From assembly GCA_020891255.1 (NCBI GenBank), contig BQFW01000005.1:682001-746000 (forward strand): a DNA stretch of 64,000 nt, given 5' to 3'. Of this stretch, positions 13,744 to 34,400 are shown piece by piece. The notes under the pieces are model-generated. The model did no database searches, was not told the origin of the DNA, and worked only from the letters and a program-made list of their open reading frames with translations. This DNA is from Entomortierella parvispora E1425 (Eukaryota > Fungi > Mortierellomycota). Numbering within the stretch: position 1 is the stretch's first letter; each line of letters opens with the position of its first letter. A program made the translations under genes and the position numbers.

Positions 13744-16046
13744 ATGTCAAAGCGCGGAAACGACAACCAACTCACGAAGGACGAGTACGATCGGGACCAG
13801 GACGATGACAGCAGCGCTGTCATGGGCACTTTCAAACAAGCTTCCAGCGACGAGATGTCACGGCGAGTGTATGTGACAACCTCATGATGAGATACATTGA
13901 ATCAGATGGATTGTGTTGTTAATCTCGCTTACAATTGTCTTTTTATGATCTCCATGCCAGTATCAAAGCGCCTCGAGGAAGAAAGGTATGTCAGGCAAGG
14001 AACGCGATACTGTTTCGATACTGTTTCGATACCCCATTTGACTAGCTGCTGAGAAGACAAATGAATAACACCCTCAATCGCTATTTTTCGTTTCTTGTAG
14101 CTTGGAGGCGCTACTGGTGAAGGTGCACCAAAGCCCTCGCCTTTCTCTGGATTCTCTGGATTTTCAGCCCCAGCGCCATCACTCTCTTCAGGAGGAATGA
14201 CTTTTGGTGCCACAGCTGCCTCTTCATCTACAGCTACGCAGTCTGCAGCCCCTACGTTTTCATTTGGAGTCACACCAGTGTCCACGACTGCAACCTCACA
14301 GCCACCTTCGACCTCGGGCGGATTTTCCTTTGGATCGACTCCAGCTGCTTCCTCGGCAACCCCTTCGTCTGCTGCCCCCTCTTTCAGTTTTGGTATTACC
14401 CCAAAGCCGGATACGAACGTTTCGACCTCTACCGCCACGAGCACGGCACCGATGTTTTCATTTGGAGGTAATTGAATGGGAATACCAGCTGACAGATAAT
14501 GATTAAATTTCTTTCTAAATATTGATATTCTGTGGAAATAGGACCAACAACCTCTTTTGGAGGATTTGGCAAGTCTACTACGACAACAACTAGTCCCTTT
14601 ACCACATCCTTCAATGCTAAAGAGTCCGTCACCAAACCTGCTCCGTCATCGCCGACCATCTCGTTTGCACCCAAGGAATCTGTGAGCAAGGCAACTACCT
14701 CCACGTCTTTATTCTCCTCTGCTACTAAAGATTCTGCAAGCAAACCGGTAGCATCTGCACCTTTGTTCTCTTTCGGATCGTCGACCTCATCAACCTCTTC
14801 AAATCCCTTTGCGATTCAAAAGGCCACCAAAAAGGACGATGCCTCCCTCATTGACGACCTGAACCGTGATCTCAACAATGATCTGACGGAGCTCAACAAC
14901 AAATTTTCTGAAAAGATCCTGAAAGAGCTGAAGAAGAACTCGCATGTAAACCTGGCAGTCCTGTTTACACAGTACACATCTCACAGGCGACAGGTCAAGA
15001 ACCACTATTTGGATCTCATCGAATCAGCCTCTATCAACGACTCGGAGAGCGAGAAGGCCGACGTTACAGATCAGTCTTCAGGATCGGCACCAAAGTTGAG
15101 CTTCGGACTTCCTCTTAGTGAGATCAAGGAGAACGAGCCTGCTAAACCAAAGTTCTCTGGGTTCAATTTTGGAATCGACAAGCCTCTGACCTCTGCATCT
15201 TCGACCAGCTCAGGGGCTCCAGCTTTTGGTGGATTTGGAAAGACAGGATCTGCACCATTCTCTTTTGGCGCGCCTGCTACCAGCTCAACTTCAGAGGCTC
15301 CTAAGGCACCCACGCCCGGTGCTTTCAGTTTTACACTTCCAACTGCGCCCAAAGAAACGTCCCTGTTCTCCACTCCTGCCACCAGCTCGGCGACGACAAC
15401 CACCACATCCAGTTCATTCACCTTTACGCCCAAGCCGTTCTCATTCAACCCTCCTGCATCTACCCCAACCACTTCAGCTGTAACTCCAGCACCCTTTGCA
15501 GGATTTTCAGTTCCGGCATCTCAGTCCGTTGCAAATAACCAAGCTGCCGACAATGAGAAAATGCCCGATGACACAAAATCGGAGCTTGTGGATAGTCGAG
15601 AGGGCGAGGAAGGCGAAGAAACTATCTTTGAGGTGAAGGCTAAGCTCTATGCCTTCCAAGATGGCGAACACAAGGATCTGGGTGTGGGACAGTTCAGGAT
15701 CAATGAGAACACAGAGACCAAGAAACGTCGCATGATTATGAGAACAACTGGAACTGGACATCTTACTCTTAATAGTACGTTCGCATGAAGCTTCCTAGGA
15801 GCTACTGTGCTGGGCTACTTTCATTCTTCTTGGTACTAATCATTCTATTTTCTTTCTCTTCCCCTCTCTCTGTCTCTCTTCCCAGGCTGGGTTATCCAGG
15901 GAATGGGTCCTAAGCGTGAAAAGAACACGGTGACGATTTTCGGTATTGAGAACGGAAAACCCAAGCGATTTGCTCTGAGAGTCAAAGAGGAGCAGTCTGC
16001 TATCGACGTTGTCAAGGAGCTCGAGGCTGCACAGACAGCGAATTAG
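13744..16046 (+). CDS. NUP2: Nucleoporin Nup2/Nup50 (N-terminal importin-alpha-binding region, FxFG repeats, C-terminal Ran-binding domain), ~5 exons
   Basis: MSKRGNDNQLTKDEYD...GTFKQASSDEMSRRV|IKAPRGRK, many FSFG/FNFG repeats, and RanBD EEGEETIFEVKAKLYAF...GVGQFRINEN...RRMIMRT; last exon 15886-16046. Confidence 0.9.
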
Positions 16047-16592
16047 GAGAGTGGATATTTCGGCGGTTTCCATTTGATATCCACCTAGAGCTCCTTCTAG
16101 CGCTTTTGGAGTTTAAGCATCAACACGAGTTGACCACAAACACCAGAACGCAGGAGCGGTCATCACACTTTAGCATCATCACCTAGAAGACAACATCGAG
16201 ATTAAAAAAAAAAAAAAAAATCGACTGGCGACCATGGCATTTAAAGCCTTTAATCCGCAGACCTTGACATCTTCTTCAACTCCCGATTTTTTCGTCCCTT
16301 ATCTACTGTCCGACCCGGTTCTTAATTGCGGATCACGTCCATGCGTCCTTTGATGCACATATCTTGACAGTTTGTCGCTGACGTTGATTGAAAATTGTTC
16401 CATTGGCTGCACCCATGAGTTTTCACACAGTGCAGTTGGACGCCGAGCTTCTTTCTGCCTGGCAGCTGATTCCAAGATGTTGGGGACAGTCTATGGATAA
16501 GCGAACCAAAAAGGAAAGTCCCTTCATGGTCGTCGACTCTCGGTTCCTTTGGGCTCCAAGTCCACGAGGATCAAAAGAAGCAAAAGCAAAAG

Positions 16593-16665
16593 CGCCCAAC
16601 GTGGGGGTCGAACCCACAGCCTTCAGATTAAGAGTCTGACGCTCTACCGATTGAGCTAGCCGGGC
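16593..16665 (-). tRNA. tRNA-Lys(CTT), intronless
   Basis: Minus strand GCCCGGCTAGCTCAATCGGTAGAGCGTCAGACT-CTT-AATCTGAAGGCTGTGGGTTCGACCCCCACGTTGGGCG; stems pair and the T-loop GGTTCGA is present. Confidence 0.96.
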
Positions 16666-16753
16666 AATTCTAAGCTAGCCGGGCCAATTAGATGGCTCGA
16701 TTGGAGATATCAATTAAGTTTCTGTGACCTCCAAGTATCAAAGCTCAATATGA

Positions 16754-16786
16754 TCACGTGACTATTGTTTTGATATAATCACGTGA
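16754..16786. promoter_or_regulatory. Pair of palindromic TCACGTGA (E-box) sites upstream of tRNA-Glu, mirrored at 31215-31245
   Basis: TCACGTGA at 16754, 16779, 31215 and 31238, preserved while the surrounding bases differ. Confidence 0.55.
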
Positions 16787-16846
16787 GATAGGTGAAGAAT
16801 CGTGGTTCCGACACCGGCTCGGAATTCTTCTCTTCATCAAGTTGCT

Positions 16847-16918
16847 TCCTAGTTGGTCCAGTGGTCAGGATTTGTCGCTCTCACCGACAAGGCCCGGGTT
16901 CGATCCCCGGACTGGGAA
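16847..16918 (+). tRNA. tRNA-Glu(CTC), left-arm copy
   Basis: Acceptor TCCTAGT/ACTGGGA; anticodon arm TTGTCG-CT-CTC-AC-CGACAA; T-loop GGTTCGATCC; followed by a T-rich terminator. Confidence 0.95.
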
Positions 16919-17320
16919 TTCTCTTTTGCCTCTTTCTCTTTTTGCTCCTGACCCTGGCCCCTGGCCTGCTGTCTTTGTCGTCCTGTCCTCCGGGCGGATG
17001 TCTCTCAAAGGTCGAGAAAGAGAGCTTTCTTTTTTTTTTTTTGGTCCTTTGGATGTTACAAATGGTCCCAAAGTTGATGGATCAACAGCGGCATCAACTG
17101 AAAACTCAGGGGCAAATATCCTTTTATTGTGAACGCCTGTCTTGGGAGGATAATGTCAAGGATATTGTGATGACTACATATATACAACGCGATCACCGCT
17201 ATATAGATACAACGACACAGGAACGTAGGGTGACGTGAAAACTGGGTAAACTAGAGTACTATTAGAGTAAACTGAGGCCATAGACGACAATGTCAACGAC
17301 CTCAAGGAGCAAACACTCTA

Positions 17321-17575
17321 TCATCGGCTCACCGCATACGCTATCGATGATGTCTGGAAAAGAAACGATGACTTTGCTGCGTTCTGACTGTCAGATATCA
17401 TCGTCCTTGAACTTCCTGCCAAACTGAATTGATCTAGTGAAAGTGATGATCGAGGAGCTGCATTGTTGTGGATTATTGCATCGTGCGACGACAGCCCTGA
17501 ACTACAATGCTCAGATCTGCTCGACCCTCGGTGGCTGTTGGTCATCTTGAGCGACAGAGACGAAAAGATACCCAT
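17321..17575 (-). CDS. Micro-protein family member A (84 aa, ends FQTSSIAYAVSR)
   Basis: Shares the family C-terminal motif. TATATAAG lies ~165 bp upstream, with an A-rich context ACAATG. Confidence 0.65.
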   Translation of the reverse strand: MGIFSSLSLKMTNSHRGSSRSEHCSSGLSSHDAIIHNNAAPRSSLSLDQFSLAGSSRTMISDSQNAAKSSFLFQTSSIAYAVSR

Positions 17576-18382
17576 TGTTATATATGTCGATTGACTTGCT
17601 TGTGTGGATCGAGGACTTGGCTTTGGCAGGGATAAGATCTCGAGAGTGAAGAGGAGACTGCCTTGGTTGCTTCTGTTACTTTTGTTGTGATGTGCTGCTT
17701 GTTTGTATTAGGAGAGAACGATCCACTCCTTTCCTTATATACGAATCCAAACTCATCAATTGTCTCCGGGACCTCTGGGGTGGATTTGTCAGTAAAGTGG
17801 CCCCACCTCAACCTTAATCCTATAGCTCTTTAGCTCCTTGCTTGGATGTCGCCATCCTTGACACTAGAAAAGCATTGCCACCGGCGCCCCATTTCCTCGG
17901 GTGTCATAGTCGGCTCAATTTGTCAGCCCACGACAAAAAAATCCCCCTCCTTCCTTTCTGGGCAAACAATCAGGTCAAGAACAAAAAATAAAAGTAAAGG
18001 AAGGGTGTCATCGATCATTTTTCTAGCCAATAATTACATTGATTGTTTTCCTCCCCTCGCAGCTACAAAAAGCGCAACATGCAAGACACCAACGGTCAGC
18101 GCTGACTCGCTTAATCCATTTAAAGTGCGAGCACACAAAAAATGACACCCTCGTTTTCGGTCCTTGCCGCAATTGCTCGCTCAATAATCATGACTCCTCT
18201 TTGCTTCACTTGTGCTTGAAAATGCAGACACAAGACATGTACGCTGTGCTCTCTCTTCCCCCGAGTTGTTCACTGACTACACAAAAATGTTTATTACTTT
18301 AAAAGTGTTGGCGAAGTTCGTGGGATATGGTACAATGAAAAGAGAAGGTAGCAGGGTAGCGACCAGGTAAAGCGACGGCGCA

Positions 18383-18589
18383 CTACGAGCGTGAAACCAC
18401 GTAGGCCATAGCTGATATCTTGAAATCAGACACAGTCTTGGCCTTGGTTGTTGGCTTCGACTCGGGAGCCGTCAACGTCTCGGCTGAAAGGGAGGATCGT
18501 GGTGTATCGACCAATTCCTCGTACTTGGATGAAGGAGTGTTCTTGCTTGTCTCCTTGGACGGCTTTTTGTTGATGTTGAGGAACGCCAT
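18383..18589 (-). CDS. Micro-protein family member B (68 aa, MAFLNINKK...FKISAMAYVVSRS)
   Basis: Internal ATG at 18589 of track ORF 18383..18904, placed by homology to 29413. TATAAAAA at 18688-18681; family motif present. Confidence 0.75.
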   Translation of the reverse strand: MAFLNINKKPSKETSKNTPSSKYEELVDTPRSSLSAETLTAPESKPTTKAKTVSDFKISAMAYVVSRS

Positions 18590-19355
18590 GGTAGATCTAG
18601 GTGTGAATGCGATTGTGGCTGTAGGAATAACGAGAGTGTATTTGTATTGTCTTGTCTCGGCATTATGAGATGTCGCTGTCTTTTTATACGCCATTTTTAC
18701 TCTGCGCCACCTTCTCCCTCTGATGGTGGGTCTTCCCCGTCTTTGTTGGTTTAGGCGAATATTCATCGAGGAGCAAATACAGCCTTGCGCCACCACCAGG
18801 GACACAGGGGAGTCATTGGGCAAACGAAAAAAAACTCTCATAGGAAGGAAGAGACAATGATACAAGGAAGAGGAGGGGTAGTGCAAGTGCGCTGCGGAAG
18901 CCATCAGATGAGTTTAGGCTGAGTTGACAGACATCGAATACGGGAAGCAAGCACTCCTTTTTTGTCCACCGAAAACAAAGTTGTACTCTTCCTTGGATGA
19001 CACCCCTCTCCTCCAGAGGACACGCCGCGTCCACTATTGGGGCAATGCTTAATTTCTACTGGCTTTTGTAATCCATGCCTATGGATCGACTGTGCAACTC
19101 TCAATTGCTTCCTTTTTACCTTTTCACTCACCGTGACAACCGGGTCAGCCACACCACGAAACCCGGACCAAGGCAATGTAGCCTGAGCTGCGCAAGATCA
19201 GCAAGGGTTTCCTGTTGGACTTCAAAGGTATAAAAGGAACATCACTACCATGTCTCTCTTCTACAATTATCAACAAACCGCATAGCTGAACCAACCAACG
19301 ATCCTACACTCAAACAAACAACGCCTACTTCATCAGGATACCTCACACAATCTCA

Positions 19356-19559
19356 ATGACCTTCCTTCCATCGCTCAAGTCGTCCTCCAAGAATAATAAG
19401 ATCGCGATCGTTTCTACAGAGTCTACCGATACCAAGACTGATTTAAGCAAGAAGAACGAAGACCCATCATCGTCTAGCACAAACGAGGCATCTTCTTCAA
19501 AGAAGAAGGCCGAGCCATTCAAGGTCTCTGCAATGGCCTACGCCATCAGCCGTTCTTAA
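19356..19559 (+). CDS. Micro-protein family member C (67 aa, ends FKVSAMAYAISRS)
   Basis: TATAAAAG at 19229. 48/67 identical residues to 28462..28665 with no indels. Confidence 0.78.
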   Translation: MTFLPSLKSSSKNNKIAIVSTESTDTKTDLSKKNEDPSSSSTNEASSSKKKAEPFKVSAMAYAISRS

Positions 19560-19799
19560 TAAACCTACCCGCCGACTTTCTTCGCATCCTGTAAAGCACT
19601 CAGCAACCATAATAGTATCAAATAAACAAGAAACAGATAGAGAGAAAGATGGAAAGAAGCGAAGAAGAGAAAAAGAAAAAAAAAAACGCGTGGTGAGCGA
19701 TGTTTCACGTGCAGTGACTCGTCCTCTTAATCATCCCATGGGAAAAAACTGGCATTCAATCTTGCATCTCTCATTCCATCCCAGGTCTTCATTTCAGCC

Positions 19800-21596
19800 A
19801 TGTCGACCCTAAGTGTCCTCGAGCGTTTTCTCCTGCTCCCTGAACTAGCCGAGTATCTTTCTGGATACCTCTCCATTAAGGACATTGGTCGACTCTCCGT
19901 TGCAAGCAAACATATTCAATGGTCTATCGCGCCATCCTTTTGGAGGAACTATGTGCTTGACAAACCAGATGATGACGTCCACAGGTTTCCCAGCCCCAGC
20001 CCTGGCCTTTCGCAGAATCTCGAACTTGTACGTTCGATCGAGTTCCGTACTCTTCACACCGGCATCTGGGACATACTCCTGGATCCGCACCTCAAAATAC
20101 AGGCAGGGATAAGGACAGTGGCTGGAGAACTCCCCGTGCCTGCTCCTCTCACTAGTCTCATTTATACCGGATTGCGCCACAACGGTGGAACAAGGCCAGT
20201 TCTCACAGATGAAGAATTTGACAAGTTTTTCTTGCTACTCAAACGAACCCCAACCCTAGAGACGCTCTGCTTGCCAAGCGACCTCTTGGAGGAGATAGAG
20301 AAGTTCATACCCATCCTTGCCCAGATGCCGCATTTAAAGTCGATCACCCTTGTCGAGGGCACTAGAGGACCAATGGAAAACTCGAGGGCCTTTGCCTTCT
20401 TAGGCGCTTGCCTCAGTTTTCAGGATCTGAAAGTCCTTCGCTGCTCCTTCCGCACCTTCAGGGGAGACGACGTTGGGAATGGGGAAGAGCGCCAAATGTT
20501 CGATTGGATCCTCGGTGCCATCAAGATTCATAAGAAGGAGGGCCATTTCCCCTTAGGACTGCATGAGCTCGAGCTCCCCGCTTATCAGGATCGGTACCCA
20601 GAATCGTTCTTGGTTCCTTTTTACACGAGCGGATTTCCTTCCCTGGAGGTATTCCATGTGCCATATATCAGAAGTTCCTACAATGTCCGACTGGAAACTG
20701 CACTGCAGAACCATGTACCCAAGTTACGGGATGTGCAAATGCCAGCCGTGGGACTCCGACACGAAATCCAAGAGGCTAGCACCCTGTTCACCTCCGTGAA
20801 ATGTTGTTCTCGGGGAGAAAATGAGCGGAAGGCTGGGAATGGATGCCGCTCTATCGAGACTATGTTCATGGGCTGGTGCTCTGGCGACACATGGATCTTC
20901 TACTGCCGGAACACACTCGAGTCCTTCATTATGAGCTCCACCCCGGACATCTGGACTCATAATGTTCAGCAAATCCTGTCGATTTGCCCTCGTCTCAAGA
21001 CCATGAAGATCAGTGGCACAGACAACGATGGCTTCTTGTTGGACGTTGAAGACTTTCCGGTATATGACGAGGCGGGTGACGAGAAAGCCGCTAGAGACTT
21101 GGCAACGGATCCAAGGAGACTAATCTATGGAAATGTCACCTTTGGGAACTTTGTTTGCAAAGGAATGAAGACTCTTTCGTTGGTCTCGGGCAGTACATGG
21201 AAGACAGATCCGATGCGTAACCGAGGATTTTATACTCAGCTCGGACAATTGAAGGAACTTGAGGAGCTCACTTATGGATATGAGCTTGCGTACGGGTATA
21301 ACGCAAAGCTCGACAGGGCTCGGCCGGCCTTGCCTGATTTAACCTTAGATTCTCAAGCTGGAGGTCGACTAGACGAATTGAGAGGTCTCAAGAAGCTGCG
21401 AGTGTTGCATATTCAGGGCCGAAGGACACATCATTCTATTGGACAGGCGGAGGTCGAGTGGATGGAACGTGAGTGGCCTCTTCTGGAAAAGGTGATCCTC
21501 AGCCCAAAAGACGAGGACAAGCAGCCCTCTGCCGAATCCGGTCATTGGAAGTGGCTCATGTCAAAGAGACACCGGCTCACAGTTCAGGACCAGTAA
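19800..21596 (+). CDS. F-box-like/LRR protein, 598 aa, intronless, inside the inverted duplication
   Basis: LLLPELAEYLSGYLSIKDIGRLSVASK at the N-terminus. C-terminal LGQLKELEEL...LTLDSQAGGRLDELRGLKKLRVL...EVEWMEREWPLLE. Confidence 0.85.
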   Translation: MSTLSVLERFLLLPELAEYLSGYLSIKDIGRLSVASKHIQWSIAPSFWRNYVLDKPDDDVHRFPSPSPGLSQNLELVRSIEFRTLHTGIWDILLDPHLKIQAGIRTVAGELPVPAPLTSLIYTGLRHNGGTRPVLTDEEFDKFFLLLKRTPTLETLCLPSDLLEEIEKFIPILAQMPHLKSITLVEGTRGPMENSRAFAFLGACLSFQDLKVLRCSFRTFRGDDVGNGEERQMFDWILGAIKIHKKEGHFPLGLHELELPAYQDRYPESFLVPFYTSGFPSLEVFHVPYIRSSYNVRLETALQNHVPKLRDVQMPAVGLRHEIQEASTLFTSVKCCSRGENERKAGNGCRSIETMFMGWCSGDTWIFYCRNTLESFIMSSTPDIWTHNVQQILSICPRLKTMKISGTDNDGFLLDVEDFPVYDEAGDEKAARDLATDPRRLIYGNVTFGNFVCKGMKTLSLVSGSTWKTDPMRNRGFYTQLGQLKELEELTYGYELAYGYNAKLDRARPALPDLTLDSQAGGRLDELRGLKKLRVLHIQGRRTHHSIGQAEVEWMEREWPLLEKVILSPKDEDKQPSAESGHWKWLMSKRHRLTVQDQ

Positions 21597-22195
21597 TCCA
21601 TTGTTGTTGGTACTCGTAGTCTCTGGTATTCGTATAAGCGTATAGCGTACAAGCAATATATCACCAATGTCCTTCGGTCAGAAACCATCCATGTGGCACT
21701 CATATCTCAACAAAACAGGGACAGCAAAGTGGATGATGGCGTTTGCCGAAAGTATTGCAAGACTACTGTCGTGGGCATCAGTCTCTTTGCTAGGAGAGCA
21801 GATGTTCAAATGCTTAGGTCAACTCTCTGATTTGTGGTGTCGCTCTCGCAAGAAAGAATCGTCAACAGATCGGTCCAGAGGTGTCTATCCGGATTGAAAA
21901 TGCGAGTCGATGGACTGTTTCCAAGCCTTTAGAACCCCTCACCTTGTAGTTCAATTTTGTGACTTACGATCGTGCCAATTCTCCTTTTCGTAGCCAGCCC
22001 TTGCCACTGTGTTGAGCCACTGACTAATCCTAAGAGGTAAATATTTCTTTATTAACCAGGAACGACACAAGTGGTCTCAAAACATTGGCATCGAGCCAAG
22101 AAAATTGAATGTGGAAATGAAGCAGAGCAGAGAAAAGCATGAACCTGAAGGCTGGCTATGAAAAAAAGATCACAATTGAGTGGATGGGTGGCATC

Positions 22196-22411
22196 TCAAA
22201 TCGTTTGCCTGATGTCAATGCGGTGGGTGCAGCACCTCCTGCACATGAAGCATCGGCTGCATGTTAATTCTCTGGTACAGCCAACAACAATGCAGATGAT
22301 GACGGGCCCCAGTGAAGTCAAGCAGTTGTCCGAGCCATCCCCTGTGCTAGCACCGCTGTTTTCTGTAGCTGCATCGTAGTCGCCAAAGGAAGCGAGGTTC
22401 TCAAAAGGCAT
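22196..22411 (-). CDS. Small ORF with C-terminal Cys/His cluster (CIVVGCTRELTCSRCFMCRRCCTH); may have an upstream exon
   Basis: 71-aa ORF with an acidic low-complexity N-half, and 7 Cys plus His in 24 residues. Confidence 0.4.
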   Translation of the reverse strand: MPFENLASFGDYDAATENSGASTGDGSDNCLTSLGPVIICIVVGCTRELTCSRCFMCRRCCTHRIDIRQTI

Positions 22412-23118
22412 GTCGAGAGAATCGTTTGGAGTAAGGGGGTGAAGCTGGTCAGTGGAGATGGGGGTGCTTCTGGATAGGACCTTGAGTGGAGAGCTGTGCT
22501 GAGTGCTTCGAAAGGACGGGGAGGTTTGGAGAAAGAGAGTGAAGTGATGGCAGCATCAAGAATCCTTTTTTTTTATGGTTTTCATCATTGCACCTGGAAG
22601 GCACGATGCGGTGTTGCTGCTACATCGACCTGTGGTCTGTCTCGGCATTGGAAGTACAGTGATCAAAGGCATAGAGGAGTGAGAAGGATCGACCATTTCA
22701 TAGTCGTGACCAACATCTACCTTAGGCCATCGATTATCACCGACTGGACCACCGCGGTTCACCCTCGGGGAAGATCGTTGCGACTTGACGATAACTGGCT
22801 TTGGGAGTTCGCCCTTTTGCAAACATAGGCTGGTGTTGGAATCCGAAGTTCATTCAATTCAACATCACGGGACACCAAGCATCAAGGGGTGGGTGGTCCA
22901 TTCTTCCTGCAATCCACTGCCCTTTCCCTCTTTCCTTCAAACAACGCACGTCCTCAACTCAACCAGCCAACCCAACGCTCAAGCAAGAGACCACCTCTAT
23001 CTTCCCAAGCACTTTACCACAACCCTATGTAAGGGACTAACATTATCCACATACAACAGCGCTACTTCTGTGTCTATCAGCCGTTCAAACTCTAACCTCC
23101 TTCCAACGACTCTCTAGG

Positions 23119-23349
23119 ATGCGTTTCCTCTCTTCTTTAATCCTTTTCTCCATCATTGCTTCTGCTATGGGAGCAAAGCCAAGCTGCCCAAAGATATCCG
23201 GAGACAACCAGAGCGTTGGTATCTGCATGGTGCAGCCTGGCGATTGTAATTACTACAACATAGACTGTGGACCCCATGGCGTATGTTGTAGAAAGCCAGG
23301 AGGATGTGGAGATTATTCTTGCTGGAAGGATGGGCATTGGTCAAACTGA
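23119..23349 (+). CDS. Small secreted cysteine-rich peptide (8 Cys), defensin-like spacing
   Basis: Signal-peptide-like MRFLSSLILFSIIASAMG. The mature part has C-x12-C-x6-C-x6-C-x5-CC-x5-C-x4-C with a G-x-C motif. Confidence 0.8.
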   Translation: MRFLSSLILFSIIASAMGAKPSCPKISGDNQSVGICMVQPGDCNYYNIDCGPHGVCCRKPGGCGDYSCWKDGHWSN

Positions 23350-23673
23350 GAAAGCAGCTGTTGAACAACAGCAGTTACCATGCTCGAGAAAAGGAAAGAA
23401 ATAAATATAGCATCTGACAGTCATGGCGCGACATGGCAGAGCCAGTGAATCTGGAGATCAAGTGTGGAGTAGCAATGAAGTGCTGTCACCACTTGCTCGG
23501 TGCTTCTTTCATCCCGGGGAAAGGAGGCGTTTCCAATCTCGGGGCAAAAAGAATTTGTCGCAAACACTGCATTGTGCCACAGTGCATGTGGCTCCACATC
23601 CAGGACCCCACACTTCGCTGTTGATAATGTATTTTTATTGTCCACTGCGCCCACTCTGAATAGCATCCACGCC

Positions 23674-25548
23674 TCACAAAGAAAGGTTGTACCAAGCCCA
23701 ACTTTGCTTCGTCTCTACTTTTTGCTCCTCCCCCCACGGACTTTTGTTTTGCAACTGCTTTTGAGAGCTACTTTTACCGTCATTGATCCTGTCATCCGTG
23801 GGGCTCCTCATCTTGGTCAATCCAGCCACGTTTTCAGCAGCCAGTCTAGCTCGTCTGACTTCCTGAAGCATGTCGAGTGTGACTTGATGAATACAACAGG
23901 AAGCATGGCACCGATTGCAATCCAAGCACATATTGTTTGTACGATCTTGACATCCCTGGCAAGTCAGCGCGTTCATTTCATCCTCCATCAAGTGCTCGTA
24001 ATCAATCGTGATCAGAGCTCTATTGACCACTGTTTTTTTACCGCTTCTCTTGCCGACTCCTTCGCCCCGGTCAACTGCGACCTGACCCTCACTTTCGTCG
24101 CCGTATTGCCCCTTGATCTTGTCTTGCTGGTCTTCGCGGCGTCTCCCTTCTTGATATCTTACTTTCGGTCTCGTTATCTCACTACTGCTTCCCTCTACCT
24201 CACGCAGCTGAAGGTAGTCAAGTTGAGGCACAGGAACACCCTCAAGCCACTCGAGGAGGCGATCAGGCGGTGTAAGGGCAGATTCGGTAAAGCACGCTTC
24301 AATGCCATTGAAAAAAAAACCGTGATATGAACTGGGTGCCTCAATATCTGATAGTGGCGACTGAGGAAGGGAAAATGTGTCATCGCTGACCGGATCATCC
24401 TCCCGAATCAGATCAGCTGCGCCGAGAACACCCTCCTCCTCTTCTTCAAAGTCGCTTCCATGATTGGAATCGGGGCGGAACATGTACCCGGTGTAGGCGC
24501 CGTAACCGCAATACTCATAGTATTCTTTGTGGAGATCGTCCCTTTCTTTGTCACAGTGGATAGGGTCGATACAAGGAGTGGGGTTTACAAGGGGAAGGTC
24601 GACGTTGGGTGTATCCCAAGGCTCAGGTAACGTGCGCTTCGCTCTTCGGATGTAAGATGGATACCTCCAGGATGAAAGGGTCCAAGGGGTCGGAGGGAAA
24701 ATCGCATTGAGATCAGAAGTTTTAGTGAAAAACGGGCCGGTTGGAGAACCAGTAAGCGCTCTCTCTATGGCCCTTGGTTCTCGTATAGCGGAAGTTTCGC
24801 GAGTTGGGGACGAGTTGTTGGACGGAGGATGCTTGTTTACGAAACAAATGATCCTGGGCAACGTGGTCTCGAGTTCGGCCGTGCCGAGGACCCTCTGTGG
24901 TACGCTCTGCTCATCGTTGTAGTAAGGCTCTTTGATATCAACCTCCTCAAGAATCGGTAGTTCATCAACGCGAGCGCTCTCGTCGATTTCTTTCTGCTGT
25001 CCACTGCGGCGGTGGCCACTCTCTAAGGTCGTCTCAGGATCGCAATCGTAACAGTTTGTCGTAATCAAACTGCGCACGTGGATTTCGCTATGTTCAATAC
25101 AAGTCGGCTCGGAGCCATCGACGGCGTGTCTAGATTCGACCACCGCCTTCGAGTCTGGGGTATATGTGATGGAAGTGCGTTTTAGACCTGTTTCTTGTCT
25201 GGTTTCAAGACCATGAGGATAGTAGTGCTTGGAGGGTTCACCACAGGGTAGACGTTCATTCCGCTCAGACGACTCTGCACTCGTGACCTTGGCCTCAATC
25301 AACAATTTATTCGAAGTGCCGTTCTCGACAGCAGGGTGCCCCAGAGGCGCGGTTCCCGCAGGTTGGAAGTCTTCACGATAGTGATTGACGGGTTCTTCAT
25401 TCTGTAAGTTTTGAGAACTCGAGTTGATCGACTCTTGGTGGCCAGAGTCAATCCCGGAATTGTCTGAATTCTCAGTTCCAGAAGGTGTAGCTGGAGAAAC
25501 AAGAACAGAAAGAGTGGGAATTGGGTCACCGTAGCGATGTTTGGTCAT
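23674..25548 (-). CDS. Hypothetical, mostly disordered protein (~624 aa from probable ATG 25548) with a C-terminal Cys/His cluster
   Basis: Open frame 23674..25677 with ATCATG context at 25548. CQGCQDRTNNMCLDCNRCHASCCIH is encoded at ~23887-23961. Confidence 0.7.
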   Translation of the reverse strand: MTKHRYGDPIPTLSVLVSPATPSGTENSDNSGIDSGHQESINSSSQNLQNEEPVNHYREDFQPAGTAPLGHPAVENGTSNKLLIEAKVTSAESSERNERLPCGEPSKHYYPHGLETRQETGLKRTSITYTPDSKAVVESRHAVDGSEPTCIEHSEIHVRSLITTNCYDCDPETTLESGHRRSGQQKEIDESARVDELPILEEVDIKEPYYNDEQSVPQRVLGTAELETTLPRIICFVNKHPPSNNSSPTRETSAIREPRAIERALTGSPTGPFFTKTSDLNAIFPPTPWTLSSWRYPSYIRRAKRTLPEPWDTPNVDLPLVNPTPCIDPIHCDKERDDLHKEYYEYCGYGAYTGYMFRPDSNHGSDFEEEEEGVLGAADLIREDDPVSDDTFSLPQSPLSDIEAPSSYHGFFFNGIEACFTESALTPPDRLLEWLEGVPVPQLDYLQLREVEGSSSEITRPKVRYQEGRRREDQQDKIKGQYGDESEGQVAVDRGEGVGKRSGKKTVVNRALITIDYEHLMEDEMNALTCQGCQDRTNNMCLDCNRCHASCCIHQVTLDMLQEVRRARLAAENVAGLTKMRSPTDDRINDGKSSSQKQLQNKSPWGEEQKVETKQSWAWYNLSL

Positions 25549-26471
25549 GATGATATTGACCTGAGTTAGGGCGGCTATTGATTCGTAGTCTTGGTGGAAG
25601 GTATCTGGGAGAAATAGTTGGCAAGAGGGAGGAAAGCAAAGGATTCTGTGGTAGCTCGTTTTAAGGCGCGTTCGCATGTGCTGTGGTGCAACGAGGAGAG
25701 AGTCGATAATGAAGAGCGACGCGCTTTTAAAATATATCTTGAACGGCTTTTGTACCTTGCTAAATTCCTAATCAGCAACCCGTTTCTCGAGTGCATGCTT
25801 TGTTTGTCTCTTTTTTTTTTGGTCCGACATCGAAGATCCTCATCTGTTTACCGCATACGTCTAAGGACATTTATATTTCAGTAGATGGTTATTCAAGTAG
25901 GGGCGGACTTTCGAAGATAGACCTCATTGTCAAGCCGATCATACTTCATCCTGACATTCTGAAAGATGTTGACGGCAGCGTCAGTTTTCTTTGTAAACCA
26001 TCAACTTTATCAGTCAGAGATGTTCCTCCGGAGACTTCTTGGTTGACCTTTCTTGTAATTGATTTCACAGAGGGGCGATTTACATAATGAGTACCCTATT
26101 GTCGTCTATGAACTTGATTCGAATTGATAAAGGAGATCAGACCGGAGAAAGTTTTGTCAATTGGAGCAAAGGATCAATAAACGAACTTGCAAACGCCACG
26201 TTAATCAAAGAGTGTGGGAAGTGTGGGAGTCCGGGTCTTGTGATATCACTCGGCACAATACCGAACAAGATGAGATGGAAAGATACGGGGGTAACGCGCT
26301 TCATTGTCGGCGAAAGTTCACAAGCCAGCAGCTGGACGCATCCATTTACAGAAAGCCAAAAGCTTCCGCGCTTCCACAATTTTCAGCCGATTTTATTTAT
26401 TTTTTATTTTTTTATTCAAAAGGTCGTTGAAGCAAGAAGGTAAACAGGGGTGAATGTGGGATCAACAGTGC

Positions 26472-26930
26472 CTATTCTTCGGTCATCGACCACGACGATG
26501 AATAAGACATGGAAAAAGAGGTAGTGTCCTCCGAGTCTATATCTTGCTGAGAAAGAGGTCCCAGATCGCGGAGGGTATGAAATTCAACAAAATGGTCGGC
26601 ACTGAATCGTTCGGCGCGATAGTAGTACTGGCACCACAAACAAGTCGTTGGGCAAGCTCTCAAACGGCATCGGGACCCAGCCATACTAGAATTGTCTGAC
26701 TCAACGCCTCCATCGCTTTCACTGTCGCAGTCCCCTTCACAACCGCTGTCGTACGACGATTGAACGTCTTGCGATTCTCGCCATTGATTTCCGTTGATGG
26801 GAGTCGGGACTGGGGAAGTCTTGGGGAGTGTTTCTTTGGGACGAGTCGATTTGGGTCGGCTGTGTTTTGGTAATCGAAGAGGCATGGCTGAATCAATGGC
26901 AGTGGAAGCGAGCTGATGAGTGGGATCCAT
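26472..26930 (-). CDS. Hypothetical 152-aa protein with a CRLRACPTTCLWC motif
   Basis: TATAAAAG at 27021-27014, ~85 bp upstream; Pro/Ser/acidic N-half followed by four clustered Cys. Confidence 0.5.
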   Translation of the reverse strand: MDPTHQLASTAIDSAMPLRLPKHSRPKSTRPKETLPKTSPVPTPINGNQWRESQDVQSSYDSGCEGDCDSESDGGVESDNSSMAGSRCRLRACPTTCLWCQYYYRAERFSADHFVEFHTLRDLGPLSQQDIDSEDTTSFSMSYSSSWSMTEE

Positions 26931-27232
26931 TTTCGATGGGTGAGTGGAGATGACAGTGGGGACATGAAGGTATGATTCGTTGGGTTTGGGGCTCGGCTCG
27001 GACTGTGGGTCAGCTTTTATATCTTCAGATGTGTTGTTGTTTAGTTACAACCATCAGTACTGCTCCAAAAATACGGGAGGATTTTGGAGCTCAAGCTTGA
27101 AGGACGCGCAGCGAAACTCCAGCTAATAGAAAGCGGAGCAATTGGCAGAATGTCACCACTCTTTTCTATCAATACGCATGCCATCATGAGAAAAAAACAA
27201 AGTCGGAGATCTTGGGGGAAAACGTGGGGAAA

Positions 27233-27269
27233 ACCGTAATGTCTCTGCACCGTAATGTCTCTGCACCGT
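27233..27269. repeat. 16-bp tandem duplication
   Basis: ACCGTAATGTCTCTGC twice, plus ACCGT. Confidence 0.9.
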
Positions 27270-27740
27270 GCACGACCATTTACCTTTTAATCTCCATTTC
27301 GCGCTGAAATGACACTGTAGAGTGATATCTTTTGGGGCCTTGGCAATGGAGATGGACGAGGTGATTGTGGAGATGTAGCAGCAGGTTCTTCGACTGCCAC
27401 AAAATACCGCGTGGTTTTTTTTCCCTTTTCGGTGGTGGAAACAACGCTTGGCAGTGTGGACCTTGTAGCTGGGCTACAGACCTATCTCTTTATCGTTTCA
27501 TTCGGTGCAGGAAGGAAATTACGGCTTAAAACCCAACTCTTCGTCAGTCTTGGAAGGTAACCACAGCGCCATCTCGTTCCAGCAAGTAAGCAAAAAAAAA
27601 AAAAAAAATGGCGCCAGCATGGTACACAAAACCAGCGCGTCATTCGATTTCTCCTTCGTTCTCTCCTCTTCTCTCTTGTCACGTTCAAAGTTAACGATTG
27701 CACCACCAGATCAAAAACAGGCCCCGACACTATCACAGCA

Positions 27741-28016
27741 ATGCATTTCCGAGAAGATATCACTGGCATCTCCGACTCCCACCGTGGTCATGCTGGCCGA
27801 CCCGTTTTCTCACCTTCCGTCAACGAGTCAGTTACTCGCCGCGCGAACGAGTGCAGCTATAACGATTGCGCCAAACCTGTGGTCTGCATCCTGGAATACT
27901 GCAAGAAGTGCGATCGGCATTGCCCCCACCCCAACAATGGTGACCGTTGCAGCGTTTACGGGTGTCTTAGTCGCAAGTTGGCTGGTCGCGTCAACTGTAT
28001 TCATCACTGTGTGTAG
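27741..28016 (+). CDS. Small ORF with two tandem C-x4-C-x10-C-x2-[CH] zinc-knuckle-like units; start uncertain
   Basis: CSYNDCAKPVVCILEYCKKCDRHCPH and CSVYGCLSRKLAGRVNCIHHC have identical spacing. Confidence 0.5.
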   Translation: MHFREDITGISDSHRGHAGRPVFSPSVNESVTRRANECSYNDCAKPVVCILEYCKKCDRHCPHPNNGDRCSVYGCLSRKLAGRVNCIHHCV

Positions 28017-28461
28017 ATGAGTCGCGTTACACACGACTTTTGGAGGAGTTTTCCAGCAGCATGAGCAAACAGCCTATCAACAGATTCTGCCTGAGTTTCT
28101 CAAGAATGTCTTCATTTCAAAATAAACCTTCTGAGCTGATGAACTCAGCATCAGATACATTACCTACCCGCACAATCCAATCGACCCTTTCCGATGCATT
28201 CTCATCCGCCATTTTTTTTTTTTACGTCGAAAGAGGCGATCAGCCTTTTCCGCACCTAAAGCGACCACACAATAGAAGTGTGGAGCCAGACAAGGGCCAT
28301 TGGCTTTAAGAGAGAAAAGAAAATGCTAGCTCCCTCCGACCGCGTTGGATTAGGGGTAAGATAGGTTGATACTCGTAAACATGGTTGTTCTGGACAATGA
28401 TGTAAAATATGTTCTTTTGCTGAAGCTATGTCATGCAATTCGTAGTATCGGTCGGCCTCTG

Positions 28462-28665
28462 TTACAAGCGACTGATGGCGTAGGCCATGGCAGAGACCTT
28501 AAACGGCTCGGCCTTCTTCTTGGATGAGGATGCTTCACTTGGGCTAGACGACGAATGAACCCTAGTATTCTTGGCTGACTCGGTCTTTGTGTTGGGAGTC
28601 TTTGCGGAGACAATCGCGACCTTGTTGTTCTTGGAGGATGACTTGAGGGAGGCAAGGAAAGCCAT
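28462..28665 (-). CDS. Micro-protein family member C' (67 aa, ends FKVSAMAYAISRL)
   Basis: TATAAAAG at 28811-28804, ACAATG context; paralogue of 19356..19559. Confidence 0.78.
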   Translation of the reverse strand: MAFLASLKSSSKNNKVAIVSAKTPNTKTESAKNTRVHSSSSPSEASSSKKKAEPFKVSAMAYAISRL

Positions 28666-29412
28666 TGTAATATTGTTCTTTGTGAGAGTGTCTTAATGAT
28701 TTCGAGGTGTTGACAGGCCGCTTGTTTGAATGAAAGATCCTTAGTTGGTTCTTTTGTGCTGCTGATTATGATGGTGGGTCCAATGAAGGTGAAGATAATG
28801 TTGCTTTTATACTTTCATAGCCCCTGCGGGAAGGCCTTGCTGACCATGCGCAGCTCTGACTTGGTTCATGCCTGGTTGTATGGTTGGCCAGTTATCACAG
28901 TGGGTCCATCACTTAGTAGACGCGGCGTGTCCTCTGCTGCTGCTGCTGCTGGAGGCGAGCGTTGTCATTGAGGGGTGTCATCGAGGGGTGTCACCCAAAG
29001 GCGTCATCGGAGTGTAAAGACAAGTAAAGCAAAAGCGGAGAACAGTGCAACTTTGTTTTTGATGAACAAAAAAGGAGTGCTTGCGTGCGAATGTCAATTG
29101 AGCTGGAGCTCGTTTGATGTGCCGCAGCACAATTGACACGATCCCTCTTTGTTTCTTCTTCTTTGTTTGCTGATCTCTCTGTTTCCCCGGGTGAGCGCCA
29201 AATGCTTATTTTTTGAGTCAGATTTGCGCAGGTAGCGTTTGGTCCTCAACTCAAAATCAATATCCACCGCGCACCACCAACCCATTTGTCAGATGGGGGG
29301 ACGACTGAGTCAAGAGGGAGTATAAAAAGACATTGGCAATACCAAAGGACCCAGATGCCACAGACAAAACAATACGAATACAGCCAGGGCCGGAATCACC
29401 GCTGAATCCATC

Positions 29413-29619
29413 ATGTCGTTCCTCAACATCAACAAAAAGCCGTCCAAGGAGACAAGCAAGAACACTCCTTCATCCAAGTACGAGGAATTGGTCGATACAC
29501 CACGATCCTCCCTTTCAGCCGAGACGTTGACGGCTCCCGAGTCCAAGCCAACAACCAAGGCCAAGACTGTGTCTGATTTCAAGATATCAGCTATGGCCTA
29601 CGTGGTTTCACGCTCGTAG
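29413..29619 (+). CDS. Micro-protein family member B' (68 aa, MSFLNINKK...)
   Basis: TATAAAAA at 29321. Protein identical to B except residue 2 (GCG vs TCG). Confidence 0.75.
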   Translation: MSFLNINKKPSKETSKNTPSSKYEELVDTPRSSLSAETLTAPESKPTTKAKTVSDFKISAMAYVVSRS

Positions 29620-30426
29620 TGCGCCGTCGCTTTACCTGGTCGCTACCCTGCTACCTTCTCTTTTCATTGTACCATATCCCACGAACTTCGCCAACACTTT
29701 TAAAGTAATAAACATTTTTGTGTAGTCAGTGAACAACTCGGGGGAAGAGAGAGCACAGCGTACATGTCTTGTGTCTGCATTTTCAAGCACAAGTGAAGCA
29801 AAGAGGAGTCATGATTTTTGAGCGAGCAATTGCGGCAAGGACCGAAAACGAGGGTGTCATTTTTTGTGTGCTCGCACTTTAAATGGATTAAGCGAGTCAG
29901 CGCTGACCGTTGGTGTCTTGCATGTTGCGCTTTTTGTAGCTGCGAGGGGAGGAAAACAATCAATGTAATTATTGGCTAGAAAAATGATCGATGACACCCT
30001 TCCTTTACTTTTATTTTTTGTTCTTGACCTGATTGTTTGCCCAGAAAGGAAGGAGGGGGATTTTTTTGTCGTGGGCTGACAAATTGAGCCGACTATGACA
30101 CCCGAGGAAATGGGGCGCCGGTGGCAATGCTTTTCTAGTGTCAAGGATGGCGACATCCAAGCAAGGAGCTAAAGAGCTATAGGATTAAGGTTGAGGTGGG
30201 GCCACTTTACTGACAAATCCACCCCAGAGGTCCCGGAGACAATTGATGAGTTTGGATTCGTATATAAGGAAAGGAGTGGATCGTTCTCTCCTAATACAAA
30301 CAAGCAGCACATCACAACAAAAGTAACAGAAGCAACCAAGGCAGTCTCCTCTTCACTCTCGAGATCTTATCCCTGCCAAAGCCAAGTCCTCGATCCACAC
30401 AAGCAAGTCAATCGACATATATAACA

Positions 30427-30681
30427 ATGGGTATCTTTTCGTCTCTGTCGCTCAAGATGACCAACAGCCACCGAGGGTCGAGCAGATCTGAGCATTGTAG
30501 TTCAGGGCTGTCGTCGCACGATGCAATAATCCACAACAATGCAGCTCCTCGATCATCACTTTCACTAGATCAATTCAGTTTGGCAGGAAGTTCAAGGACG
30601 ATGATATCTGACAGTCAGAACGCAGCAAAGTCATCGTTTCTTTTCCAGACATCATCGATAGCGTATGCGGTGAGCCGATGA
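30427..30681 (+). CDS. Micro-protein family member A' (84 aa, same translation as A)
   Basis: TATATAAG at 30261; double stop TGA TAG; family motif present. Confidence 0.65.
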   Translation: MGIFSSLSLKMTNSHRGSSRSEHCSSGLSSHDAIIHNNAAPRSSLSLDQFSLAGSSRTMISDSQNAAKSSFLFQTSSIAYAVSR

Positions 30682-31082
30682 TAGAGTGTTTGCTCCTTGA
30701 GGTCGTTGACATTGTCGTCTATGGCCTCAGTTTACTCTAATAGTACTCTAGTTTACCCAGTTTTCACGTCACCCTACGTTCCTGTGTCGTTGTATCTATA
30801 TAGCGGTGATCGCGTTGTATATATGTAGTCATCACAATATCCTTGACATTATCCTCCCAAGACAGGCGTTCACAATAAAAGGATATTTGCCCCTGAGTTT
30901 TCAGTTGATGCCGCTGTTGATCCATCAACTTTGGGACCATTTGTAACATCCAAAGGACCAAAAAAAAAAAAGAAAGCTCTCTTTCTCGACCTTTGAGAGA
31001 CATCCGCCCGGAGGACAGGACGACAAAGACAGCAGGCCAGGGGCCAGGGTCAGGAGCAAAAAGAGAAAGAGGCAAAAGAGAA

Positions 31083-31154
31083 TTCCCAGTCCGGGGATCG
31101 AACCCGGGCCTTGTCGGTGAGAGCGACAAATCCTGACCACTGGACCAACTAGGA
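31083..31154 (-). tRNA. tRNA-Glu(CTC), right-arm copy
   Basis: Exact reverse complement of 16847-16918. Confidence 0.95.
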
Positions 31155-31406
31155 AGCAACTTGATGAAGAGAAGAACTCCAAGCCGGAGTCGGAACCATG
31201 AGTCATCACATGCCTCACGTGATGCTATCAAAAGCAATCACGTGATCATATTGACCTGTATACCCTTAAGAGCCCGAGGAACTGCCACTTTATTGGAACT
31301 TACTGGGAGGAGGATATGGTTGCCAAAGTGTCAAAGACATCCTCCCATGCCTCAGTTAACCTTGAATCCCCCCCTTTTATCCTTTGTCCTTGTAGACAAC
31401 TTCTCT

Positions 31407-34400
31407 TTAGCTTCCAATATAATACATGTTCAGACTGTGGACCTCCCGAGCAACACCCGGCCAGCCCATGGGGTCAAATCGGCCCTTGAGTTGTTGCTCC
31501 CATTGAAGAAGTTCATACATGAACAACAAGTTAGGCTGAATAATCACGCTCAGGCGGCGGGCTCGGACCATCAGGTAAGCGTCCACGAGAGAGAGATGAT
31601 AGTGGGCCATAAGGTACGCGATCACGATCGTGGCTGAGCGAGAGACACCTACGCGACAGTGGATCAGGATCCGACTATTGGCCCTCCGTGCTTCATCTGT
31701 TTTGAGAAAGGTACCATCATAATAGAATGATTAGATTAGATTCTGAGGAACTGGATGGAAAAGAAAAGAAAAGAAAAAAAAAAAACAAAAATAAAAAAAA
31801 AAGGATAACTTACCAACAAAGTCGACGCAGTTCTCCAAGTGTCGCCACAAAGAGTCCACGCCATTGTCATACATATCATCGACCAATTTGACCATAAACC
31901 GCTTCGGTTGGGTATGGGTGTCCAGCCTCTGTGGTTGACTTTCCACATCCATCATTGCATTTTTGTCCTGAGCGCCGTCGTCTACAGACGAGTATTCGGC
32001 GTCGGCCAGACCATGGGCTTCCTCGCCAACGCTGAGCACGTATTGAATCCCAAGACTCTTTAGCAGACCTGGGTTGGAGGCGTGGGCCAAATTGCCCAGG
32101 TACAGGAACGAGAGGATCCGAGAAGGAAATGAGCCTTCAAATTCTGGGTTATAAAACCAACTGAACGCCTGCTCATGACCCGGTTTCAGGAACGGGGGAA
32201 CCTCTGAATCTACGAATTCATCCTCGTCCAGTTCAATCTGAATAGCTTGCTGACCTTCACTCTCCCTGCTGCGCTCAATCCCTTCCATCGTGTCCGTCTT
32301 GGGGGGTAACGTAGGTTGCTGCTGTGGTTGTTGCTGCTGTTGTTGATTCGGAGCCGATCCAGAGGCGGAGGAACCATTCATATTCAACAGCGATGAAAAG
32401 AACGAGGACGAGGACGAGAGTGAAGACGAAAGCGAAGACATTCCTGAAGAGGACGAAGGTGGAGATGAGCCTGGTGAAGGAGATAACGAGACGCCCGAGG
32501 AAATTAGGGCAGCGTTTCCAGCACTGCTGCTCTTGACGACGGCTGCAGACTCTCCTGCTGTCGCGGAGGTAGTTATAGCCTTGGAGGACACTGAAGAGGA
32601 TGTTGAAATAGTTCGTTCGCGAGTTTGTTCACGCTGCTGTTGCTGCTGCTGTTGTTGCGCCGTGGCCAATTGGGCGGCCTCCCGTTCAGCCCGATCTTGC
32701 GCATGAATCCGCTGCCAGATCTGCTTCTCAACCTCCAGCATCATGATCGAATCATTAGGGTATACAAAAAAACTTCGGCCAAGATCGGTCTGGAGTTTGA
32801 GATAGGCCTCGGCCAGCGAGAGTCGGTAGTGAACCATGACCACAGCAAGAGCCAATAAAGCTGTTTCCGTGTAGCCATCCATGCAATGGATCAAGACTTG
32901 ATGAGCGTGGTCCCGGTGTTGTTGCTGCTGCTTTTGATTAGAATGGCGGCGACCCTTCAAGTTGTGTCCCTCATGCTCCGCGTTGATACTTGTGCTAGGT
33001 GAGGCAACAGACTGAACAAAAAAAGCCATGTTGATCAACTGCGTGACCTGGGACTGAAGGATGGACCGTGCCAACTGATGTCCTGATACTAGGTCCGAGG
33101 CCGTACTCCTTCTCACTGCATGGTTCGATGAGATGTCGACCGTGATTTGTCCTGCCAAGGAAGACAACGAGGAAATGGAGGGTGGGAAGAGTTCTGGATT
33201 GACACTGGACGTCAGTGTCCCAAGACATTCCAACTGAAAGATCTCTTTAACGGGAAGGGGTGCAGGTGTTCCACCGACATTGCCGCGAATTCGATCCAGT
33301 GTGAATTGAGTGGGCAGGTTATTTCCAGGTTTGCATTCCACACAGATCGAAGGATGAAAGTTTGTCTGGTCGTTGAAGGAGGGTGGTGTCAATGGTGGGT
33401 ATGCATTCTCATCCGGAGGAGGAGTCGAGGGTATAGCTATGGATGACGAGCGATTGGCAGTAGATGGGCCGTTCTTGTTGGGTATAGACGATGAAGACGA
33501 AGGAAAGAAATAGGAAGAGAAGGACGTTCCAGGTGTAACAGGCGAGACCAGCGAAGACGATGAAGACATGGACCTGTTATTGGTGACTTGAGGGACATCA
33601 GCGTTGTTACCAAGCTAAATATGATGATTGCAAAAAAAAAAAAAAAAAAAAAAAAGAGACGCGACGTGTTAGCAGAAAAAAAAAGGTTCCAGAAAATCCA
33701 CACGGCTGTGTTCTTTTCCCCTTGCTTGCGACTTTGTGTCGCGTGGGCGTGGGCGTGCATGAGATGGACCTGATGCAAAAGCTCCCTTTTTTTATCGTTC
33801 GGGTCAGTGCATCGGGCGCTTTGTTCTCGTGTCGCATTTGCGTGCCACTGCGCTCAGGATCAAGCTGAGATTGTTGCTCCCGCGCGTTCAAACATCAAGC
33901 TAAACTTGAAAGGAACTTACCCAGACACCAGGCGCGATCTCAGAGGCGCGCGTAAGAAGTGACATTTGTTCACGTTCCTGATCCCAAAAGTCAACCCTGT
34001 TCTTGGTGGCCTGTCCCGAACTCGATACTGCAACGAGTTCAGGAAACTTTGACTCAAATGACTGGAACGATTCTATGTCGGTGCAAGAGATCGAAGGAAG
34101 GGAGGAAAGAGGGGAAGGGGGGAGGAAAAAAAGGAAGCGTGAGCACCGACAATCACTCTCAAACAAACCGGCGATAGCACATGGGCAAAGATAGGTACAC
34201 AAAGGGCTTTTCCATTCATGCAAAAAAAAAAAAAAAAAAAAAAAAAAGGAAGCAAGGGCGAGCAGCTTGGCCCACAGCTCTTCCCGCCGTTGTCAAGCGC
34301 GTCGCTTTTCCCGTCAATATCATGACCTCGTTCCAAAACAAACAAACATCATCACCAAGAGCTAGCAACCACAACCACTCTTTCATTTTCCGTCCGTCCG

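Follow-up and report, generated by a model that had tools for sequence, protein, structure and literature searches.

Introduction

Gene conversion is well known to maintain palindromes on the sex chromosomes of mammals and at a few loci in yeast (PMC3723533, PMC8327919, PMC9731477). The mammalian cases include palindrome P6 of the human Y chromosome (PMC3723533) and the palindromes of the primate X chromosome (PMC8327919), all of which show arm-to-arm conversion. In Saccharomyces cerevisiae, the flip/flop region of chromosome XIV has two homogenised inverted repeats, each 4.2 kb long, on either side of a 24-kb segment (Salzberg et al. 2022, PMC9731477). Each of these repeats has a tRNA-Ile gene at its edge and contains two fast-evolving, lineage-restricted genes, and the orientation of the region changes recurrently as a by-product of homogenisation (PMC9731477). 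Flip-flop inversion also underlies mating-type switching in Ogataea polymorpha and Komagataella phaffii (PMC4238957, PMC5720833). Our literature search, which covered the yeast and mammalian cases and not the Mortierellaceae or other early-diverging fungi, found no description of palindromes under conversion in those groups. Here we analysed a 64,000-nucleotide (nt) stretch of the Entomortierella parvispora E1425 genome, in which two nearly identical inverted arms, each carrying a tRNA-Glu(CTC) gene and two micro-protein genes (A and B), flank a lineage-specific spacer.

The source genome (GCA_020891255.1) was assembled with SMARTdenovo from 409x nanopore reads and polished with Nanopolish and Pilon (PMC8759367). 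The whole stretch is hereafter called the window, and its position 1 corresponds to position 682,001 of the record BQFW01000005.1 (1,910,511 bp). All coordinates are given as window positions. We consider it probable, at about 0.82, that this locus is a two-copy palindrome that arose by an old inverted duplication and whose arms have been kept alike by recurrent arm-to-arm gene conversion.

Architecture of the palindrome

Repeat search and self-BLAST revealed an inverted pair, 16735-18596 versus 31263-29406, with 98.7% identity over 1,863 nt. Within this pair, a global base-by-base alignment defined a core of 1,761 nt (16825-18585 on the left, of which an independently assembled Logan contig covers 16892-18585, and 31176-29417 on the right) in which the two arms differ at three places only, corresponding to 99.8% identity. 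The differences are a one-base length change in the T run at 17030, a T/A substitution at 18185/29817, and a C/G substitution at 18458/29544 that is synonymous in gene B. A first-pass annotation, made from the sequence alone, had recognised 16825-18585 as the reverse complement of 29417-31176, and the repeat search, self-BLAST and pairwise alignment agree with it; the T-run change and the substitution at 18185/29817 had been listed correctly, and the substitution at 18458/29544 had been overlooked.

The core extends from 21 bp upstream of tRNA-Glu to codon 2 of gene B, and identity falls sharply on both sides of it. The first inner mismatch (18586/29416) is the first base of codon 2 of B, which encodes Ala in one arm and Ser in the other. 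Homology then continues inward for about 1 kb at 60-78% identity, to about 19600/28430; identity per 100 alignment columns is 47-72%, with the C-gene stretches aligning at 78%. The left inner tier (18586-19600) comprises the diverged B-C divergent promoter region and gene C, and the right inner tier (28430-29416) comprises gene C' and the diverged C'-B' promoter region. Outward, the alignment extends for about 80 bp beyond the cores at about 85% identity, forming the outer tiers at 16745-16824 and 31177-31254. The cores are separated by 10,831 nt and the two C genes by 8,902 nt, and the spacer between the inner tiers (19601-28429) is unique. The end of identity at codon 2 of B, the weaker homology for about 1 kb inward through C and about 80 bp outward, and the roughly 8.9 kb enclosed had all been described in the first-pass annotation, and each of them held. 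The locus is not telomeric, lying about 0.7 Mb inside a 1.9-Mb contig.

Both arms have the same gene order. The tRNA-Glu(CTC) genes, predicted with ARAGORN and Rfam, are located at 16846-16919 (+) in the left arm and at 31082-31155 (-) in the right arm. Gene A, encoding 84 amino acids (aa), lies at 17321-17575 (-), and its counterpart A' (30427-30681, +) encodes an identical product. Genes B (68 aa, 18383-18589, -) and B' (29413-29619, +) span the inner core boundaries, and genes C (19356-19559, +) and C' (28462-28665, -), both encoding 67 aa, are placed entirely in the inner tiers.

Copy number of the arms

To determine the number of arm copies, we placed Logan contigs, which were produced by a k-mer assembler independently of the E1425 assembly, on positions 15300-21200. 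X1 and X2 are two short-read runs from the E1425 source sample, and X3 and X6 are other runs with the same species label. In X1, the left flank was represented by one contig at 73.7x, the arm by one 1,694-nt contig (16892-18585) at 148.4x, and the inner segment by one 10,891-nt contig at 77.4x, where these depths are word depths of the assembler and not strict copy numbers. The left-flank contig ended at the tRNA-Lys gene outside the repeat, and the inner contig, which started at 18556, corresponded exactly in length to 18556-29446, the inner segment plus 30-nt overlaps into each arm. Furthermore, in one X2 contig the G at 18458 and the right-hand inner junction occurred together, matching the assembly. 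The single, double and single depths, together with contig ends at the assembled boundaries, indicate two arm copies and no more. The E1425 palindrome is thus a real, two-copy structure.

Three apparent joints in X1 (18590 to 18947, 19036 to 19470, and 19549 to 21200) were rejected as rearrangements, because they represent the other end of the inner contig placed on its diverged twin. It should be added that identical 1.8-kb arms cannot be bridged by short-read contigs, so that only the nanopore assembly shows which way the inner segment is oriented in E1425.

Arms in other strains

The two other runs had the same depth pattern with different limits. X3 was 5-10% diverged from E1425, with arm contigs at about 8-10%. 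Its left flank had a depth of 119.9x and its 10,716-nt inner contig a depth of 126.6x, and the arm contigs reached 226.2x (17117-17993) and 191.9x (18000-18689). The double-depth part in X3 therefore extended to about 18689, around 100 nt further inward than in E1425. In X6, which was about 80% identical to E1425, the flank had a depth of 82.7x, and genes A, B and C had depths of 166.1x, 163.8x and 148x, respectively. Gene C thus seems to be inside the homogenised part in X6. The 598-aa spacer gene of E1425 was not detectable in X6 at 80% likeness.

Although the arms differ by 8-20% between strains, each strain yielded one double-depth contig, which argues for concerted evolution of the two arms. 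The inner limits differ among the strains, which points to separate conversion events in each lineage. In addition, both X3 and X6 read G at 18458, and the C in the left arm of E1425 is therefore a new mutation that arose since the last conversion.

Relatives and age of the two tiers

Two metagenome contigs from a single related species (L002 and L006), which are 99.6% alike and about 80% identical to E1425, carry B, A and tRNA-Glu joined to the same phosphatase gene that flanks the right arm in E1425, and both end upstream of B. A Logan contig (L010) begins within C, spans B and A, and stops within tRNA-Glu. In Gryganskiella cystojenkinii, one contig (L003) has the order G3PDH-NUP50-tRNA-Glu(CTC)(+), in the same orientation as in E1425. 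The flank of each arm is therefore conserved, the phosphatase side in L002 and L006 and the NUP50 side in Gryganskiella. Linnemannia elongata retains the G3PDH-NUP50 flank but has neither tRNA-Glu nor a palindrome there, and the structure is therefore limited, within the family, to the E. parvispora/Gryganskiella part.

A second Gryganskiella cystojenkinii contig (L011; JAAAIG010001020.1, 5328-10206) contains a divergent pair of C-like (-) and B-like (+) genes. A 652-aa gene with weak similarity to the 624-aa spacer gene of E1425 lies 1.5 kb away from this pair and is oriented convergently to the C-like gene, an arrangement matched on the left side in E1425; the contig ends 0.6 kb past B. The contigs of relatives end at or before the arms. 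The Entomortierella lignicola contig stops just past NUP50, and L003 and L011 stop 0.9 kb and 0.6 kb, respectively, into the presumed arm and do not overlap each other.

The two tiers of the palindrome have very different ages. Within E1425, C and C' share 75.6% nt identity with a synonymous divergence (dS) of 1.1, whereas B and B' share 99.0% nt identity with a dS of 0.02. In comparison with the relatives, C or C' is 78-80% identical to L010 at the nt level, and B is 81-82% identical to L002, L006 and L010, with a dS of 0.5 against L002; for A, the dS against L002 is 0.7. The divergence between C and C' thus exceeds that between either gene and the L010 lineage, and it exceeds that of A or B from L002 in dS. 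Since homology is unbroken from the arms through C, this divergence implies that the whole cassette was duplicated at or before the split from these lineages. Nevertheless, the arms are closer to each other within E1425 than to their counterparts in the relatives, despite a duplication that predates the split. By sequence comparison, the outer 1.76 kb was homogenised long after the cassette was duplicated.

Proposed gene conversion and alternative explanations

We propose that an old inverted duplication placed a cassette of tRNA-Glu(CTC), A, B and C on both sides of a lineage-specific spacer of about 9 kb. The arms would then have repeatedly repaired each other by non-allelic homologous recombination, in which the unbroken arm serves as template for mending a break in its partner and sequence is copied across. 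Conversion tracts would stop where the partner is too diverged, and this may help to hold the boundary in place. In E1425, the B-C promoter region and gene C would have escaped conversion and kept their old divergence. The first-pass annotation had already suggested an old duplication with an outer segment kept identical by gene conversion, a reading that is strongly supported by the contrast in dS between C/C' and B/B' and by the double-depth arms of X3 and X6.

Several observations weigh against this explanation. No read or contig was found across an arm, so neither conversion nor inversion was seen directly. Frequent GC-biased conversion can produce GC enrichment, and the arms have none (46.7% GC versus 48.6% in the spacer). 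The one-base difference in the T run may be a nanopore or polishing error. For X3 and X6, the copy number was derived from contig word depth, with one X3 arm contig at only 1.55x, and the orientation of the two arm copies was assumed.

A single recent event in E1425, whether the arms were duplicated anew or converted in one long tract, could also explain the two-tier pattern there without recurrent homogenisation. Such an event would be sufficient if E1425 were considered by itself, but X3 and X6 also have double-depth arms, with inner limits at about 18689 and through C, respectively, which implies separate events and makes this explanation improbable. Even less credit is due to an artefact of assembly or polishing, in which a repeat was collapsed or mis-joined or the arms were homogenised by Pilon. 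The mapping of short reads to 1.8-kb repeats is indeed ambiguous, and Pilon was used to polish the assembly; a collapsed repeat or mis-join was the condition under which the first-pass annotation would have been abandoned. However, the independent de Bruijn contigs reproduced the boundaries, the inner length and the depth pattern, with the X1 arm at double depth, the X2 contig carried the right-arm base at 18458 together with the inner junction of the right side, and other strains had the same pattern, which together leave an artefact very unlikely.

The arms might instead be the terminal inverted repeats of a large DNA transposon carrying the island. We regard this as the least probable of the explanations considered, with hardly any weight. 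No transposase domain was found in Pfam and atlas searches of the spacer proteins, the genome contains exactly two arm copies by depth, and both arms are located beside their present flanks in related lineages. Moreover, the ends of the arms fade through the 85% tier, such that no target-site duplication can be defined.

Orientation of the enclosed segment

Under recurrent gene conversion, an occasional crossover during repair would invert the 10.8-kb segment between the cores. The first-pass annotation had inferred that the segment from 18.6 to 29.4 kb may be invertible, and it is plausible that conversion has produced such inversions as a by-product over evolutionary time. Because the two arms have the same sequence, inversion of the spacer would be functionally near-neutral, altering only where the spacer lies relative to the flanks. 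We tentatively suggest, at somewhat less than even odds, that the spacer flips recurrently and that both orientations exist among natural strains, which would give the Mucoromycota a counterpart of the Saccharomyces chromosome XIV flip/flop region. If so, it would suggest a general way for cassettes of tRNA genes and fast-evolving, lineage-restricted small genes to arise and persist.

A programmed, reversible switch in the manner of the Ogataea/Komagataella mating-type loci, in which regulated inversion changes the expression of spacer genes, would fit the geometry of the locus, whose arms measure about 2 kb and whose spacer measures about 10 kb, compared with the 19-kb region of O. polymorpha (PMC5720833). 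However, Pfam searches of the spacer open reading frames (ORFs) of at least 80 aa and of the arm genes yielded neither an HMG or other mating-type domain nor any recognisable regulator. The locus lies well inside its contig and is not telomeric, and the spacer genes are fast-evolving orphans, as illustrated by the 598-aa gene that escaped detection in X6. Because the arms are identical, inversion would leave the arm genes with the same promoter and coding sequence, and a programmed switch therefore appears quite unlikely.

Genes and putative regulatory sequences

The left flank contains a gene for a NUP50/RanBP1-domain protein (EMPS_03705; 13744-16046, +), followed by a tRNA-Lys(CTT) gene at 16592-16665 (-), which was predicted with ARAGORN and by Rfam at 68 bits and lies outside the repeat. 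The left-flank contigs stop at this tRNA-Lys gene, both among the E1425 short-read contigs and in the contig of a relative (L004). The right flanking gene encodes a dual-specificity phosphatase on the minus strand (31407-33569, continuing beyond 33569).

Genes A, B and C are paralogues that share an N-terminal M-x-F/I-L/F motif and a C-terminal F-K/Q-x-S-A/S-M/I-A-Y-x-x-S-R motif. Their products are Ser/Lys-rich micro-proteins with conserved termini (C-terminal ...SAMAYxxSR). ORF A is conserved in L002, where it encodes 92 aa, and in L010. The omega values against L002 were 0.25 for A and 0.27 for B, and that of C against C' was 0.14. Judging from these sequence comparisons, A, B and C are genuine genes under purifying selection and not chance ORFs. 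No Pfam family matched the micro-proteins, and an exhaustive profile search of 1.8 billion proteins recovered only four further cluster representatives (50%-identity clusters), all with the C-terminal motif. Further members of the A/B/C family sit in other genomic contexts, namely in L011 of Gryganskiella, in two NCBI assemblies (L012 and L013), and on a 1.4-kb metagenome contig (L007) that carries a distant member. In L013, two tandem 71-aa genes adjoin the family member. The deposited annotation gives B as 103 aa, starting from an upstream ATG at 18694, and B' as 68 aa. The extension of B is located in the unconverted region and has no right-hand counterpart, suggesting that the 68-aa form is the likelier product.

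The deposited annotation places three protein genes in the spacer, encoding a 598-aa protein with weak leucine-rich repeat similarity (19800-21596, +), a 624-aa protein (23674-25548, -) and a 152-aa protein (26472-26930, -). In Pfam and atlas searches, the spacer proteins gave no hit above noise and neither a transposase nor an HMG domain. A single homologue of the 598-aa protein, 33% identical, was found in Gryganskiella, and the atlas model of the 624-aa protein was disordered. Clusters of Cys and His residues occur in spacer ORFs between 22196 and 28016, specifically in the 667-aa ORF at 23674-25677 (annotated as the 624-aa gene), at 26472-26930 and at 27741-28016; none of them matched a Pfam zinc-finger family. 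A GA-rich low-complexity stretch at 19653-19686, similar to another at 5806-5839, lies in a region (19634-19830) with raised contig depth in X1 and X3, and one foreign contig joins this region to a copy of tRNA-Lys. The excess depth probably reflects a look-alike elsewhere in the genome.

Each outer tier contains two TCACGTGA boxes of the E-box type, starting at 16754 and 16779 on the left (16754-16786) and at 31215 and 31238 on the right (31215-31245). The boxes are about 25 bp apart and lie 60-90 bp upstream of each tRNA-Glu, within an otherwise diverged tier. The pair is retained upstream of tRNA-Glu in L002, and Gryganskiella L003 retains one ATCACGTG and a CTTAAGGGTAT block. The TCACGTGA pair may be a conserved regulatory element. 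In the inner tiers, two islands of 89-96% identity (18947-18991/29040-29084 and 19014-19036/28914-28936) stand out within B-C promoter regions that are otherwise 50-60% identical, and a GTATAAAAG box occurs upstream of both C and C'. We consider these islands and the GTATAAAAG box to be candidate shared regulatory sites.

Comparison with known systems

The locus is small and clean, with the unconverted C/C' tier serving as an internal clock and with lineage-specific tract limits, one of which falls exactly at a start codon. It is therefore a convenient system for studying conversion tract length and the frequency of crossover and inversion, and it is suited to asking whether selection holds micro-protein genes identical while their promoters diverge. 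There is also a practical consequence. Short-read assemblies of these fungi will break at the palindrome, and the orientation of the spacer cannot be trusted unless long reads span it.

The Ogataea/Komagataella loci resemble the E. parvispora palindrome in geometry only, in that inverted repeats of about 2 kb can recombine and invert the enclosed region. In those yeasts, the invertible region carries MAT genes and has one end in silencing chromatin, orientation sets the cell type, and inversion is induced, whereas no MAT gene was found at the E. parvispora locus.

Mammalian sex-chromosome palindromes share more features with it, including inverted arms that are >99% identical, contain gene families and evolve in concert, with a unique spacer between them, and rare spacer inversions have been reported there as a by-product. 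The E. parvispora locus differs in being two to three orders of magnitude smaller, in its position on an ordinary chromosome of a fungus whose vegetative nuclei are haploid, and in the lack of GC enrichment in its arms.

Among published cases, the S. cerevisiae chromosome XIV flip/flop region is the closest. In both systems, inverted repeats of a few kb surround a unique segment of 10-24 kb, a tRNA gene lies near the outer end of each repeat together with two fast-evolving, lineage-restricted protein genes, and the repeats are kept alike within strains but have diverged between lineages, with no mobile element in either. However, the arms of E. parvispora are shorter (1.8 kb versus 4.2 kb) and their genes encode micro-proteins of 68-84 aa. 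The homogenised tract in E. parvispora halts at a start codon, beyond which a third paralogue remains diverged, and its limits vary by strain, whereas the boundaries in yeast are the same in all species. Finally, both orientations are documented in yeast, while E. parvispora is represented by one assembled orientation.

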